From Marsupella aquatica (lineage: Eukaryota > Plantae > Marchantiophyta), in the NCBI GenBank assembly GCA_973895155.1, contig OZ316897.1, forward strand, positions 3,504,211 to 3,568,210: DNA of 64,000 nt, given 5' to 3'. The stretch's first letter is position 1; each line of letters opens with the position of its first letter. The notes below the pieces were generated by a model. That model was not told the DNA's origin and did not search any database. It saw only the letters and a program-made list of their open reading frames with translations. Shown here in pieces: positions 34,792-45,558 of this stretch. The translations under genes and the position numbers were made by a program.

Positions 34792-36546
34792 ATGACGACG
34801 ATGAAATGCTACGACAAAGTGTGCGGGACAAGGTCGCCGCTGGCGACTTCGGCAATAAAAATATTCTGCTTCGTACTAGTTGGTTTGCTGTTCGTCCCAT
34901 GGCTATGCGAGGATTCAGAAATGTTGCACCGATTGATGGACTCTTACGTCACCCCGAAAGATGTTGCTCTCCTCCCTGAACACACAGAATTAATAAATGG
35001 ATTCGGATCTGCACCAACACCAGCAGCAGATGGACCGATATCGATGCTCATCCGCGACATTAGAGACGCGGTTAAAGTAGCATCAGGAGAATCGGATGTT
35101 AGTTTTAGTGATGAGGATAGGGAGGCCTGGGAGGAAAGATTCCCGTGCAGGAGCCGAGTGGAGCTAGAGAGGTACTACGAGAAGCGAAAGCATGTTCCAT
35201 ATGTGCCGTTGAGCAAACAGTGGCAAGAGGTGTTGGGAGAATACGCGATCTTGCACAGGGTTTGTACGCAAAGGGTCGGGAACCTGACCGATTACTTCAT
35301 GTCTAGAAACGAGAGCGTAGGCTGTAAGTTTTTAATCGCTGAGGCTCATTACGGACTGGGGAATAAGGTTATGCACATATCGTCGTTGGTCATGTACGCA
35401 GTCCTCACGCAACGGGTGATACTCATTCCCAAGTCCACCTCCGTGCCACAAATCATGTGCGAACCGTTCGCGGGATCCTCCTGGTCGATGGATGACGATC
35501 TCCATCATTTTATCAAGACTTATCGGCAGACGTCAAATCAGCTGTACACTGCTATCGATGACGAAATGTCTGGGAATGGATCCATGAACATACACGCGTC
35601 TAACGGTGGAGGCGTCTGGGGACCGGGACTCAGGTTCTGGTGCAACACAGAACAAACGATGTTTGAAAGAGTGACGTGGCTTACACTCGACGGATGTTTG
35701 CACTTTCTTCCGAAGCTCTTCGGCATTGCAAAATTCCGGCCTATTTTGGAGGATATCTTCCCGAAGAGGATTGTGCTCACTCACGTCCTGAGGACTGTCA
35801 TGCTGCCCGCAGATCCCGTTTGGGAGCGAGTCGTTAACGTGACGAGTGGTCACGTTGATGACGCCGAGAAGCAAGTGGGCGTGCAAGTACGCTTTCTCAA
35901 AGGCGAGAGCCAATATAGAAGGGATAATTATCCCGTCAATGAACACATCACTCGATGCCTGTTTGAGGAGGGTTTCCTCCCAGAAGTGTGTCCGGAAAAC
36001 GCCACAGTAGTTGCAGCAGATGGCAGATTGGTGAATTGCTCATCATCTGCGATTAATACTGGTCCGCCGCCACCGGTGACGAAGGTCCTCATCGCATCTC
36101 TCTTCCTCGGCTTCCATGACTTCCTTCAGAACATCTATCACGGCCAGGCGACCGTCGATAGGGAAACTGTCGCCGTTGTGCAGCTCACGCACGAGAAGAC
36201 GCAAGGCGCTGGAGTCGACGTCGATAGTCAAGCCCTGGTCGAGATGATTGCGCTTAGTTTTTCGGACGTGTTACTAGTCACTCCCTTCTCTACTTTCGGG
36301 GGATTAGCGCAAGGTTATGGAACTCTGGTCCCGTACTTCATCCAGTACAACGTCACGGAGAATGTTCCTTGTCAGCGCGGTTTGACGACGGAGCCTTGCT
36401 ATTTAGGCGCGATACCGTTCTTCGATTGTCGCTACGACTCCCCGAAGCAAAGCAACGTCGTGGATGTCGTTCCCTTTTTGCAGGACTGCTTGCCTATTGA
36501 TGTTGGAAAAGGCATGTACGGGATGCTGATGATGAACGAGGAGTAG
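34792..36546 (+). CDS. FUT: GT37 alpha-1,2-fucosyltransferase (xyloglucan/AGP FUT family), type II membrane protein, intronless CDS
   Basis: N-terminal TM segment (IFCFVLVGLLFVPWL); GLGNK...YAVLTQRVILI, CEPF.GSSW, VGVQVR, ALVEM.ALSFSDVLLVTPFSTFG.LAQG, PCQR....EPC match the plant XG_FTase family. Confidence 0.92.
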   Translation: MTTMKCYDKVCGTRSPLATSAIKIFCFVLVGLLFVPWLCEDSEMLHRLMDSYVTPKDVALLPEHTELINGFGSAPTPAADGPISMLIRDIRDAVKVASGESDVSFSDEDREAWEERFPCRSRVELERYYEKRKHVPYVPLSKQWQEVLGEYAILHRVCTQRVGNLTDYFMSRNESVGCKFLIAEAHYGLGNKVMHISSLVMYAVLTQRVILIPKSTSVPQIMCEPFAGSSWSMDDDLHHFIKTYRQTSNQLYTAIDDEMSGNGSMNIHASNGGGVWGPGLRFWCNTEQTMFERVTWLTLDGCLHFLPKLFGIAKFRPILEDIFPKRIVLTHVLRTVMLPADPVWERVVNVTSGHVDDAEKQVGVQVRFLKGESQYRRDNYPVNEHITRCLFEEGFLPEVCPENATVVAADGRLVNCSSSAINTGPPPPVTKVLIASLFLGFHDFLQNIYHGQATVDRETVAVVQLTHEKTQGAGVDVDSQALVEMIALSFSDVLLVTPFSTFGGLAQGYGTLVPYFIQYNVTENVPCQRGLTTEPCYLGAIPFFDCRYDSPKQSNVVDVVPFLQDCLPIDVGKGMYGMLMMNEE

Positions 36547-37927
36547 GCAGCAATCAGGATTGGTTGATTGCTCATTATGGATGATACCGGTAGCTTTAGA
36601 CTTGAATCCAACCATTCTTTTACTCTGTAGGCGAGGCTGTTGGTGGACTACTGGTTACCAAATTTGAGAGATCTACTCCTTCATAGGCTTGACGAGGCAT
36701 TAGATAGACTTTGGCTAGGCTTAACCTGTGAATACATCTAAGTCAACGAACCTGGAGATATGTAATTGACGAGCCCGTCGCTCAGTTTTCTCCTCTCCAG
36801 AGTTCTTTCCTTCTAGGAATTCTTACGAGTCTATAGTTTTATAGATCTATACAGGTCTGCAGATTACAAATTGAATTATTCTTTCAGTCACTTCGTAGCA
36901 CGGTAATCTCAGCATTACAACTGATGGTCACGAGTTCTGACGGTGATATGATCACAAGTAGATCTAAATCGAGCTTGGTGCGCCTTGGAGGGACGATGCC
37001 CCTCGGATGTCACAGGAGCCTGGGATCTTCAAGACGTCGATTTGTGGTTTACCTGGGACCACTTCAATGCGCAGATTTGTGCTCGATGGAGACAGAGGTG
37101 ACTCAGTAAGTGAAATAATTCGGTCATCCTCGAAGAGGCTTGGCTGATTTCCAAAGAGGGTGGCGCAGACGATTCGGACGCCACCTAGCTTTTATACTCA
37201 ATATGTAGTTTCTAGGGTTACGGTAGTCTTAATGGCGCGCAAAAGCAGTTATTCCGGAGGGACCTTGAATCGCCATGATTTGAAAGGTATCGTCTCAATC
37301 ACAATTATATAGTGACCCCAGTTTATTGAGATTCATAATTTCATACCAAAGCCAAGAATTCTTGGTGCATCTAATGTGAGTACGTTCTCTAGCGTTGAAT
37401 CAGGTCCATTAATTCCGAAGCTCTACAGTAACAAATTTGGCGCAAAATCAGTCGTTGCTGAGTGCTTAACTCAGCTCCAAAGTAACTTACGCATGTTTCA
37501 GCATCGCATGCTTGTGAGTTTTCACTTTTCGTGGTTAGCGAACGAACGGACTAAGTTGTCTGTTTGTGGAGGTTGTGAACATTTGTGGTGGAATGTCAAA
37601 AAAGCTGGTTCACAGAAAACACGGAATAAATGTGCTTGCTGGTCGCACGGGTCAATTGTCAGCTTTTTCAGTGTGTCAGGAAATGGGCGGAGTTTTGTTG
37701 ACGAGATCTTTCCTAGTATGCCCTTGCCTTTCCTGGTATTCCCTAATGACGAGACGCTATTGTTGACTGTCGTCGATAGCCTTGCCGCAATGTTTCGAGT
37801 CCAGTTGTTGCTGTGTTTGTACAAGTAAGAAAGCATTGTTAGCAGGTTCCATGTCAATTCTAATCTGGGTTCCAATTTCCAGACGACAGAGTGAGAGAGT
37901 CAGTGATGAGATCTTCCTATCCGGCGT

Positions 37928-38139
37928 GGTGAAAGATGGACCAATTCAACCTTTCCTTCACACTAAGTTCGACCAGAGTTTGAAAGAGAGTCGTTACCTT
38001 CTTGGCGCCGGCAATGTGTTAACGCTCCATGAAGAATGAGCTTCAAAGTGGAAAGTGAGTCTACCGGTGTTGGCTTTGACAGAGACCTCGCATGCGTTTA
38101 TTTGAATTGGTCCATCTTTCACCTCGCGAGGTCTCTGTC
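37928..38139. repeat. Interleaved inverted repeats (22 bp perfect; 14 bp perfect)
   Basis: 37928-37949 pairs with 38102-38123; 38078-38091 pairs with 38126-38139. Confidence 0.85.
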
Positions 38140-38294
38140 TCTTTTTCTTTCTGTCAGGCTCCAGTTTGGGACTTTGGGGCATAGGTTGCACAGTGTTTGC
38201 ACTTTGCAGAGGCGCTGATCTGTCCCGTCCAACAATCTCACGACAAGGAGGGGACATGAGGAGCCACCAATGCAACTTCCCTTCAGGAGAGTTA

Positions 38295-38970
38295 TGTTGA
38301 AAATGAACCACACTCGAGTCAGAGATGGTGCAGGCATGAAGGGTCCCATCTTTAGAGATGGTGCAGGCATAAAGGGTCCCATCTTTAGAGATGGTGCAGG
38401 CATAAAGGGCCCCAGACAAGGAGGGGATCTGAGGAGCTGGCAAGGAGGGGACCTGGCTAGGAGGAGCTGGCAAGGAGAGGAGCTGGCAACACAAGTTCCA
38501 TTCAGGAGAGTTGTGCTGGAACTGAACCACACTCAAGCAAAGATGGTGTAGGCATTAAGGGCCTGTAGCTCAGTGGTAGAGCACTATGATGGACAGGGCA
38601 GGTCCTAGGTTCAATCCTTAGCTGGTCCATGCTATTGAAAATTCCATGGTATCAAAACCAAAGATCAGGCACTCCCTTGAAATAAGCGTGACTTAAGAGA
38701 GGGTGTTGAAAATGAACCACACTTGTACCAGGGATGCTGCATGCATGAAGGGCTTGTAGCTCGGCTCAAGGGAGGGTGTTGGAAATAAACCACACTCGAA
38801 CTAGAGATGATGCACCCATGAAGGGCTTGTAGCTTGGCTCAAGGGAGGGTGTTGGAAATAAACCACACACAAACCAGAGCATGAAAGGTCTGTAGCTGAG
38901 TGGGTGGTGGAAATGAACTACACTTAAATCAGAGATTATGCTTGAAGGGCTTGTAGCTTAGTGGTAGAGC
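38295..38970 (+). mobile_element. Tandem array of a TRIM (miniature LTR retrotransposon) whose LTR contains a tRNA-like sequence
   Basis: LTR starts TGTTG(G/A)AAAT(G/A)AACCACAC at 38295, 38514, 38704, 38777, 38850, ~38905; full LTR 38514-38646; PBS TGGTATCA at 38647; 57-bp interior ending in PPT AAGAGAGGG. Confidence 0.8.
38559..38629 (+). tRNA. tRNA-like (pseudo-tRNA) module inside the TRIM LTR; anticodon arm degenerate
   Basis: GGGCCTG-TA-GCTC-AGTGGTA-GAGC...GGTC-CTAGG-TTCAATC-CTTAG-CTGGTCC-A: acceptor, D and T stems pair; A and B boxes intact. Confidence 0.7.
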
Positions 38971-39375
38971 TTACTAACCGTAGATGGGGACAAATTGGTA
39001 CAATGGTGAATTGGCAGCAAAGCTGGAAGATGCTGTGGGGCGTGTGGGGCTTTGCCCAAAGTTTGTTTCTTCATATGGAGACTACTGAATCATGGATTCT
39101 TCACTCACGAGAGAGCCAGCCACTGGAGTGTTAGTGATGGTTTGTGTGAGCAACCTCCAGTTTGAACACATGAAACACCTCTTTTTCACATGCTGTAAAG
39201 TTAAGGCCCAATGGCAAGAGGTGGGACAGTTCTTGCATCACTCCCCTGTCCTGAACTCAGCCCATGGCTCATTGTTTGACTCGACCAAGGAGGCTATTAT
39301 GGTGCACGAAAGGAATTATCCCTTTCCTTTCGTTCTCATCTCCAAACTTTGCAACACCATTTGGAAAGAGTAAAA
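38971..39375 (+). mobile_element. LINE ORF2 3' fragment (zf-RVT), decayed
   Basis: Frameshifted translation WQQSWKMLWG..LPKVCFFIWRLLNHGFFT.ERA.HW.VSDGLC..NLQFEHMKHLFFTC....QW...LCNTIWKE. Confidence 0.75.
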
Positions 39376-39399
39376 CTTACTCTAAGTTTCTTGGGAGCT

Positions 39400-40050
39400 T
39401 GCAGCTAGGATGGGTTGCTTGAGACAGACCAAGAGCTACCTTAAATCCATGTTGGATTTGTGCAGGTCCCCAAAGAAAGCCAGACAATTGCAGAAGGCCC
39501 TTAGCAGGCTTCATGAGGTGCTCAAGCCCTGGGCGTCTAGTGTGATCCCCCAGGCATTTAACCTTGACACCCTCGATGATAATTGAGCGTAGAGAAATGG
39601 ACCTTGACCTAATGCACCTTTTGCTTAGCTCCTGGCAGTGTGGGGGCAATAAGCCTGAATTTGTTAGTCTTTTTGGCAAGAGTGATAGACTCTTTTCTCT
39701 TGTTCAGGACCACTTGGGCCAGAGTTGGACTGCCACCCGTAATCTTAGGAGGAGCTACTCTGCTGAGAAGGATAGTAGAGATAGATTTTTTAAACATCCC
39801 ACCACTTGTATTAATTGGAGTTGGAGATACTTTTTGTAGGTTACATAGGAATTGCACCAGCTGGCTTGGATGGAGCCACTCTCTGTTGACTCTTCCGGCT
39901 ATCATGGCCAGATTAGTTTTCTCCCCCCCTTGTGGTGGGGCTGCGGCCCCTTGTTGTCCATTTTGGCTTGAGTGGTTTTTGCCCCCTTGCTGCCCATTAT
40001 GTTATTCAAAATTGAGAAAGAAAGTGGCAGAGCTTATTCATTCCCTCTGA
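39400..40050 (-). repeat. Dispersed decayed repeat, related to 49400-50060
   Basis: Shared blocks GGCA(T/C)TTAACCTTGACAC and GAGAA(A/T)TGGA(C/T)CTTGACCT in the same order in both copies. Confidence 0.5.
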
Positions 40051-43031: not shown

Positions 43032-45558
43032 TCATCTTCTCCTCCCGGGCGGAGTATCAACAGGGAAGAGCGGGCATTTGCACATCTTTCTCTTGTTTTC
43101 GTACTCCGTTTCGCAGGTGTAGCAGAACTCATAACCACACCTGAAAAGAGATATGACAGGCCACACCAACCAGGACACCATTTGTCAAATACAATCTGCA
43201 ATTCCAAGCCATGCTCAACAAGTACCTGGAAACCTTCTAATTATATGTGGGAGAAAATTGGACTAAATTGGACTAGGTTTTGATACTCAGGGCTGCAAAT
43301 TTCAACCATGTGCAAAGGATGCACAGTTGACGCGCTTATTAGCATCGGATGAAAATGCCCTTGTCTATTCTACGCTACAGACATGCTAGTTTCCAACGTT
43401 CATACCTCACACAAAGTTGCTTACAATTATGGTCAAAATTCCCAGAATTTGTGAGCCCTAGGATTGGAACCCCCTCCGAAATAGATGCTCAGGATTGTCA
43501 ATCCTGCCAGGATTATGCCAGGTATGTGATACCTTTTATGTTCCATAATATTCATTGTTATGTGACAGGAGATCTGGCTTATCGATTCAAGAAATGTTGA
43601 CCAGACGTTTGGAATTCAGATCCATTATTGCAAACTAGACGTCTCCATGAGGCTGCTGACGACTTCTTCTGTGTAATGTGTTCGCTTGGCTCATTTTTGC
43701 ATTCGCAAAAATTGCCTCAGTTAGCGAATTGTTATGATCCATTTTCTGAACTCTGTTTTAAGTTTGATCTCAAACGTTTCGTGAAAGTCACAGCAGGAAG
43801 TCCATAAGAATATGACACCGATTAGCTTTGGACCAAAATGTGGACTGTATGTTTGACAAAGTTTTGATCAAATACAAGACCGACGACATCCAGGCAAAGT
43901 ATGAGTTCCCTTGGACTGCGTTATCGTCAATAAACATGAGAAGTTTTGTGCAAAGTTTTGAAAGAGAAGAAGCATAACCTGCAAGTCATGTGGAAGCAGC
44001 CATGGGCAAGGACGATCAGACTACGGCATTTCTTGCACCGCCTCCAATTCTGCTCCTTGGCGAGCTCAAGGAGAGCCTTCGTATCTTCTTCATCTTTCTC
44101 GCATGGTGGGAGGCGCTGATATTGCTGGCATGTGAGATCGGAATGCCATGGAACTTGACACTTCATACAAAACAAACGATAGCATTCCAAGCACTGTGTG
44201 CAGGTACGAGGCGCCCGTCTCAAGGACCAGGAGGAAATCCTAGACGTCTTGTTGCCTTTTTTATCATCATTTCTGCACATCATGGCGGAGCAGCTTGGAA
44301 ACGGGCAGTACACTCTCTCTGAATCAGAGATGGCGGCCTCTGCCAACCGTCTCGTATACTTGTCAAATAAGGTCGGGGTGACGAGGTGCTGGCAGTCGTC
44401 TAGGCGCATATGGATGGCACAAGTAAAGAATTGCGGACATCGGATAGGCACCTTGCAGGCGGAAATTTCAGCCTCGACGTGCCGGGAAAGACAATTGAAG
44501 CAGAATCGATGGTCGCAGTCTTTTAAACACACCATGTCGGAGGCAAAAATCTTTTCCAGGCAAATGAGGCACTCCTTGCGAGTGTCGTCTTCCAAACGAG
44601 ACTTCCCCTTCCAATGCCTGATCTCCCTTTTGCTGTAATGGACTTCAGGCTTATAAGGGACTATGGCTCTCTGTGCTAGATGGATGGCCTCCTCGTTCTC
44701 GGTGCGTGAAATACAACTCACATTAAAGCTCCTCAGATCCATGATTTGTTTATGCAGTGCGTCCAGCAAGTTCAGCAGTTCCGACGTCCAAGCGTCGGCC
44801 ATACCTTGAAACTGGAAAAGTCAACATTAATTCATGAACACCATCAAATTGAGCACTAGTACTTTTAAGTAAAATGCAAGCAAACTGGCTAGACTGACAG
44901 CACAATCAATGGCATCTCATAGATGAAGCTCTACGAATTAACACCAGGACAAGCACAACAAGAAAGGTTCGAAATGCTTCAGAACTAGCCAGAGTAAAAG
45001 CTCAAAGACGATCATGGTACCGATGAGGCTCTGTTGACTAATATACGTGTGTGCACATGACCGAAATGCTCACGTAAGTTCCCTGAGATATAGGCAGGGC
45101 GACCGTCATGGCCATTGCTGGAAATCAATTTGTAAACCTGGTAACCTTTGGTTCAGGAGATTTTGGAAAGCTCACTAGTAGGACTTTGAATAAATCATGA
45201 ACTTCAAAAGCGGAAGAAGATGCCTCACCTCCCAATACATGAAGGCCCGATTGCCGTGCGCGTTTATCCGTCTCAAACCTGTTTTTCGGGCATAAGCAAG
45301 ACCTTTGATCAAAGCATTGTACTCCGCAAAATGGTGACTGATCTCGAACCCTAAACATTCTCTGTCTTCAAAGACGACTTGACCATTTGTGTCTTTCATC
45401 ACCCACCCGACGCCAACGTTACCTCGATCATCCCTAGCTTCTGCAAAGTAGAGATCATACAACTGATCCTCTTTGGAAACAATATTTGTTACATTTCTAT
45501 TTGACTCAGTGAAGTCCTGCCAGGGTTGCTGCTCCCTCGCCAGCATCTCCAAGTGCAT
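43032..45558 (-). CDS. RBR E3 ubiquitin ligase with N-terminal RNase-H-like domain (RSL1/RFA-like); 3 exons: 45558-45229, 44811-43979, 43140-43032 (423 aa)
   Basis: GT-AG introns in compatible phases; RING1 CLIC..CDHRFCFNC..CP..C; IBR YCPFPSC..CLEC.RLFCMKC.VPWH..LTC; RING2 RCKKC..GCFHMTCR|CGYEFCYTC with catalytic Cys; start codon tentative. Confidence 0.88.

Follow-up and report, generated by a model that had tools for sequence, protein, structure and literature searches.

The window analysed here, a stretch of 64,000 nucleotides (64 kb) of the liverwort Marsupella aquatica, contains an array of about 730 bp at positions 38242–38972, which is composed of six partial units (A to F) with unit B as the sole intact one. 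All positions refer to the window. The array is flanked by two open reading frames. At 34792–36546 on the forward strand lies an intact, intronless ORF of 584 aa with a xyloglucan fucosyltransferase domain (GT37, PF03254, E = 6e-59); a look-up of the identical protein in the contig index gave no record. The ORF on the other side, at 43927–44802 on the reverse strand, encodes 291 aa with RING and IBR domains resembling an RBR-type E3 ligase, and probably represents one exon of a larger gene. Since a GT37 and a RING-IBR ORF are found on either side, the array is located in plant nuclear DNA. No consequence of the dead copy for these neighboring genes was seen.

Two nested inverted repeats are present just upstream of the array at 37924–38139. 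The first has 26-nt arms that are 96% complementary and 152 nt apart (37924–37949 and 38102–38127), the second has perfect 14-nt arms separated by 34 nt (38078–38091 and 38126–38139). They could be a hairpin-forming element or the remnant of a MITE. A candidate remnant of a LINE zinc finger (zf-RVT) at 38946–39131 was dropped, as Pfam gives nothing for this segment.

Layout of the array

All units of the array are found on the forward strand. The 19-nt motif at the start of the units, TGTTGAAAATGAACCACAC, occurs six times within 38295–38923, compared to 0.12 occurrences expected by chance. The array begins with a non-LTR segment termed X1 (38242–38294) with direct repeats D5 (80%) and D7 (91%), which lies ahead of the first LTR stump and ends at its 3' side in the purine-rich tract CAGGAGAGT. 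X1 is repeated as X2 at 38415–38513, and this second copy is enlarged by a minisatellite. Neither X1 nor X2 matches the 57-bp interior of the intact unit or contains a primer site, and X2 showed no significant similarity to the full unit. Given its purine-rich end and its repetition as X2, X1 probably derives from the 3' part of an interior of another type. The X segments together (38242–38294 and 38415–38513) may represent the 3' terminus of such a second interior.

Between the two X copies lies LTR stump A (38295–38414), which consists of about the first 50 nt of the LTR followed by a minisatellite and does not carry the tRNA-like part. Unit B follows X2 and comprises the only full-length LTR of the array (38514–38646, 133 bp, TG...CA) together with a non-coding interior of 57 bp (38647–38703). 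Units C (38704–38776) and D (38777–38849) show the same deletion form and are 81–83% alike. Unit C consists of 60 nt of LTR, broken off within the A box (GTAGCTC), that are fused to the last ~13 nt of the interior plus the purine tract; both units correspond to the full unit minus a single deletion, which starts in the A box (GTAGC/TC) and leaves the final ~13 nt of the interior in place. Unit E (38850–38904) is a shorter stump with GTAGCTGAGTGGG as its last bases, which breaks at GAGTGGG. Unit F (38905–38972, 3' end approximate) is an LTR stump that includes the tRNA-like part up to the D arm; its D-arm stretch GTAGCTTAGTGGTAGAGC at 38953–38970 differs from unit B by one mismatch, and unrelated sequence lies beyond. 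All five units other than B are therefore stumps, each broken at or within the tRNA-like part. Within the 60 nt that they share, the stumps are only 70–84% alike, which makes any account of how the array arose uncertain. When flanks of the array and X2 were searched for further LTR remains, nothing was found above shuffled controls.

The minisatellites were also characterized. The one in stump A (38321–38414) has a period of 33 bp, 2.8 copies and 96% matches and is built from the pre-tRNA leader; it is much younger than the surrounding array. The one inside X2 is a 15/30-bp minisatellite of GGAGCTGGCAAGGAG at 38431–38489.

We searched for further copies of the element and for a possible partner. 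When the unit and the entire array were compared by blastn to the 64-kb window, no further copy was found. Scanning metagenomes for the 19 nt at the start of the LTR returned 52 loci, about the number expected by chance, none of them matching beyond the 19-mer. Two scans of viral contigs with patterns running from the tRNA to the primer site gave no matches, and three matches in prokaryote contigs turned out to be normal tRNA-Thr or tRNA-Ile genes of bacteria that have TGGTATC downstream by chance. There is no Copia partner within the 64-kb window, and no gag or pol remnants were found near the array.

LTR signals and the tRNA-derived module

LTR B begins with TG at 38514 and closes with CA at 38645–38646. 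It is built from a 45-nt leader (38514–38558), a 71-nt tRNA-derived module (38559–38629) and a 17-nt trailer (38630–38646) with TTCCA as its last bases. The leader is common to all six units in the alignment and would be U3-like, provided that transcription starts at the tRNA-like part. Directly after the CA follows TGGTATCA at 38647–38654, the beginning of a primer-binding site of the initiator-Met type (TGGTATCAAAAC, 38647–38658), which is the sole such site in the window. Compared to TGGTATCAGAGC, the usual initiator-Met site of plant Copia elements, it matches at 10/12 positions with the first 8 contiguous. At the other end of the interior the polypurine tract AAGAGAGGG (38695–38703) adjoins the next TGTTG, both together spanning 38695–38708, and only 36 nt separate primer site and purine tract in this clean unit. 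The junction between purine tract and LTR start (AAGGGAGGG followed by TGTTGG) recurs between C and D and between D and E, and a variant form precedes A and B.

A first-pass annotation made from the sequence alone had described a 133-bp TG...CA repeat at 38514–38646, an initiator-Met-type primer site behind it and a 57-bp interior with a purine tract, and all of these are present as described. It had also called the ~190-bp unit complete. This is correct for one LTR-plus-interior unit, which is intact, but not for an element with two LTRs: the layout of LTR, interior and LTR start is present, but only the first LTR is full-length. The presumed second LTR at 38704 is the 60-nt stump of unit C that breaks in the A box. 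As the upstream copy is also a stump, the array has no intact LTR pair. With truncated units at either end of the array, no target-site duplication is readable; this applies to the present copy and does not speak for the family. An intact copy would have a reconstructed length of about 2 x 133 + 57 = 323 bp. The copy in the array is dead.

We then assessed the tRNA-like segment of LTR B. It gives a full-length match to the tRNA family of Rfam (RF00005) with 40 bits (gathering score 29), and this is the only Rfam match in the whole 64-kb window. Type 2 Pol III promoters contain an A box and a B box, and the two boxes of the module, TAGCTCAGTGG at 38566–38576 and GGTTCAATCC at 38608–38617, fit the textbook form, with TAGCTCAGTGG agreeing with the A box consensus TRGCNNAGTGG. 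The segment forms 6/7 pairs in the acceptor stem, 4/4 in the D stem and 5/5 in the T stem. The anticodon arm is degenerate, its stem having at best 3 pairs with a mismatch. ARAGORN called no tRNA at default settings and, at relaxed settings (-ps), only a pseudogene resembling tRNA-Pro(tgg) with a poor anticodon stem. For the free RNA a rod-like fold is predicted with a minimum free energy of -25.2 kcal/mol, compared to -13.1 kcal/mol for a cloverleaf lacking the anticodon stem, so that the cloverleaf lies 12 kcal/mol above the minimum. Shuffled versions of the module RNA reach a similar predicted stability (z-score -0.78). The 71-nt cloverleaf proposed in the first pass is thus upheld for the A and B boxes and the acceptor, D and T stems, but not for the anticodon arm or for the predicted fold of the free RNA. 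Because of the degenerate anticodon arm, the ARAGORN calls and the unfavored cloverleaf, the module is not a tRNA gene but the relic of a promoter that derives from a tRNA.

Five units out of six (B to F) have a leader that runs directly into the start of the tRNA-like part (GGGCYTGTAGCT); unit E retains this part through the A box and unit F through the D arm. As its start is joined to the leader in 5/6 units, the tRNA-like part is not a late insertion into one copy only.

No run of four T residues is found on the sense strand between 38200 and 39181, the first T-run downstream being located at 39182, and LTR B has no T4 terminator. Shuffled sequences also lack T4 in 34% of cases for the array and in 72% for the unit. 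The absence of T-runs is not statistically meaningful in comparison to these shuffles, and we rejected its interpretation as an adaptation to Pol III.

Relation to Helenus and competing explanations

Helenus elements have been defined as TRIMs with a tRNA-like sequence in their LTRs (Kojima 2024, Biology 13:119, PMC10886601), the definition including a primer site, a purine tract and target duplications. TRIMp3 was proposed in the same work as a collective name for Cassandra, Helenus and Ajax. Helenus was reported there from fungi, from six animal phyla and from a single plant species, Selaginella moellendorffii, and the target-site duplication is 5 bp in plants and fungi; fungal Helenus with a 5-bp duplication has been linked to Copia partners. 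Pol III transcription of Helenus was inferred from conservation of the boxes and stated to be unproven, and the module was concluded not to be a working tRNA. Tandem arrays were noted for Helenus LTR-11_DR, and insertion of a SINE into a TRIM LTR was suggested for the birth of a Helenus family (all PMC10886601). The first-pass reading of the locus as a miniature LTR element carrying a Pol III-type cassette of tRNA origin fits both the anatomy described above and the Selaginella family. It had further stated that it knew of no named family of this kind, without excluding one, and had itself named prior cataloguing as grounds against novelty. Because the kind is already catalogued as Helenus, with a plant member (PMC10886601), the novelty is refuted at the level of kind. 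Only the plant host group may be new; the array belongs, in decayed form, to the published Helenus/TRIMp3 kind and is closest to the Selaginella family. We found no report of Helenus or TRIMs in liverworts in the literature; a survey of 48 plant genomes found no TRIMs in the moss Physcomitrella (Gao et al. 2016), and a sugar-beet paper from 2026 mentions Helenus only in passing. The host group probably lacks earlier reports of Helenus.

The Selaginella family, Helenus-1_SMo, has an LTR of 120 bp, an interior of 85 bp, a total length of 325 bp and a 5-bp TSD. Its LTR starts with TGTT, ends with CA and consists of a 32-nt leader, the module and a 16-nt trailer. The interior begins with TGGTATCGGAGC and the primer site with TGGTATC, and the consensus contains TTTT 9 nt before the end of the LTR (PMC10886601), plausibly a Pol III stop. 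We compared the array element to this family by two short motif searches, a motif look-up in Kojima's consensus file and reading by eye. Both are non-coding TRIMs with the same order of parts (leader, module of ~71 nt, trailer of 16–17 nt), TGTT...CA LTRs, an initiator-Met-type primer site starting with TGGTATC and a purine tract before the 3' LTR, and their sizes are close, with LTRs of 120 bp in Selaginella and 133 bp here and total lengths of 325 and a reconstructed 323 bp. The Helenus-1_SMo 20-mer GTAGCTCAGTGGTAGAGCAC is present in the array copy with 20/20 matches and the 18-mer AGGTCCTGGGTTCAATCC with 17/18. In Kojima's file both motifs were found in Helenus-1_SMo only, compared to 12 occurrences of a generic D-arm 17-mer, in a look-up that is blind to motifs split by a line break. 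By eye, the tRNA modules agree at ~51/72 positions, or 47/55 outside of the anticodon arm, and the leader blocks TGTT.GAA, TGAAC, CACAC and AACCAG are common, in this order, to Helenus-1_SMo and the consensus of the local units. Also by eye, acceptor pair 5 is A-U in Helenus-1_SMo and C-G here, and T-stem pair 51-63 is G-C there and A-U here.

The two elements also differ. The host lineage is another one, the leader is ~13 nt longer in the array, the anticodon-arm region is unrelated, and so are the interiors (57 bp here, 85 bp in Selaginella) except for primer site and purine tract. Furthermore, the array copy has no TTTT near the LTR end, is part of a decayed array and shows no TSD. The sequence likeness suggests common descent of the array element and Helenus-1_SMo, although much of this likeness would also result if Copia-dependent TRIMs had captured similar tRNAs independently.

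Other known systems share single traits with the array element. Cassandra, the 5S rRNA-bearing TRIM of vascular plants, likewise has an internal Pol III promoter derived from a small RNA in each LTR, and tandem arrays are reported for it as well (title of PMC7215508). Its module is derived from 5S rRNA, whereas the one found here is tRNA-derived and of the type 2 promoter form with A and B boxes; a search of 37500–39800 against Rfam with E-values up to 10 gave no 5S match, only the tRNA. Pol III transcripts have been shown for Cassandra only. Short, non-coding tRNA-derived SINEs (SINE2) also have a tRNA head with A and B boxes. SINE copies, however, begin at this head, end in a LINE-type or A-rich tail and have no LTR, primer site or purine tract, whereas in the array the 45-nt leader precedes the head position in all six units, no tail is present, and TG...CA ends occur together with a primer site and a purine tract. 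Retrozymes resemble the array element in being small, non-autonomous and bounded by LTRs that contain a structured small-RNA motif. This motif is a hammerhead ribozyme and the life cycle involves circular RNA, and the array element differs in both; the Rfam search at the locus detected no hammerhead.

We consider it likely that a Helenus-type TRIM formed a tandem array at this locus, which is now old and decayed, and three other explanations were weighed against this. The locus could be a tRNA pseudogene caught in a local minisatellite that was never mobile, with TG...CA, primer site and purine tract being coincidental. All copies are indeed local and in tandem, two unrelated minisatellites occur in the same stretch, and a target duplication is absent. 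Nevertheless we regard this explanation as very improbable: the 8/8 match to TGGTATCA is located exactly after the CA, a purine tract is located exactly before each TGTTG, units B to F share a 45-nt leader running into the tRNA-like start, and layout and size copy those of a published mobile family including the shared 18- and 20-mers.

An ordinary TRIM could also have received a tRNA-derived SINE or a tRNA gene by a one-off insertion into one LTR, in which case the module would not be a family trait. The whole tRNA-like part is present in unit B only, and Kojima proposes just such a SINE insertion into an LTR for the birth of Helenus (PMC10886601). However, units B to F share the transition from the leader to the tRNA 5' end, and E and F keep the A box and, in F, the D arm; since this junction is shared, the ancestor of the array already had the tRNA-like part. 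In Helenus-1_SMo the module is located at the same place in the LTR, and no poly(A), SINE tail or duplication flanks it in the array, which makes a one-off insertion very improbable. Least probable of all, in our view, is a larger element, either an autonomous Copia or a LARD, that carried the tRNA module in its LTR and whose 57-bp interior is a deletion product. X1 and X2 do look like the 3' end of a second, different interior. Primer site and purine tract of the clean unit are, however, only 36 nt apart, the size fits the Selaginella TRIM, and gag or pol remnants are missing nearby.

Proposed transcription and mobilization of a Helenus-type TRIM

For an intact copy of the Helenus-type TRIM, we infer the following steps from the model of Cassandra and from the interpretation that Kojima gives for Helenus. 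The A and B boxes of the 5' LTR would recruit TFIIIC, and transcription by Pol III would begin near 38559 at the tRNA-like 5' end. The tRNA-derived module would serve as an internal promoter in this process and not as a working tRNA. Pol III transcription of the element is thus suggested by the analogy, and the transcript would run through trailer, primer site, interior, purine tract and the leader of the 3' LTR into the module of the latter. With the leader acting as U3 and module plus trailer acting as R-U5, the transcript would gain the terminal redundancy needed for strand transfer. The RNA would then be packaged and reverse-transcribed in trans by a partner of the Ty1/Copia type that primes with initiator tRNA-Met and supplies Gag, reverse transcriptase and integrase. 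The integrase of this partner would act on the TG...CA ends and leave 5-bp target duplications.

The array itself would most likely have originated by unequal recombination between LTRs. Later deletions may have occurred between short look-alikes, namely ...AGC/AGTGG of the A box and ...AAGC/AGGG near the purine tract, and growth of the minisatellites would have come after these deletions.

A further and rather doubtful proposal is that the array element and Helenus-1_SMo derive from one ancient Helenus lineage of land plants, shared by bryophytes and lycophytes, which would be more than ~450 million years old and older than Cassandra. If this were true, the acceptor and T stems would have been kept by compensatory changes. 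Such changes would in turn mean that the RNA fold is under selection and that the A and B boxes are not the sole constraint; RNase P/Z-type processing or packaging would be possible reasons.

Elements of the Helenus type cause tRNA genes to be called wrongly in large numbers, and they spread Pol III promoter boxes across genomes. The published plant record of Helenus consists of the single Selaginella family (PMC10886601), and with its liverwort host the locus described here extends Helenus to bryophytes. A second plant family bears on the question of whether plant Helenus is ancient or has arisen repeatedly, and on which Copia lineage mobilizes it.
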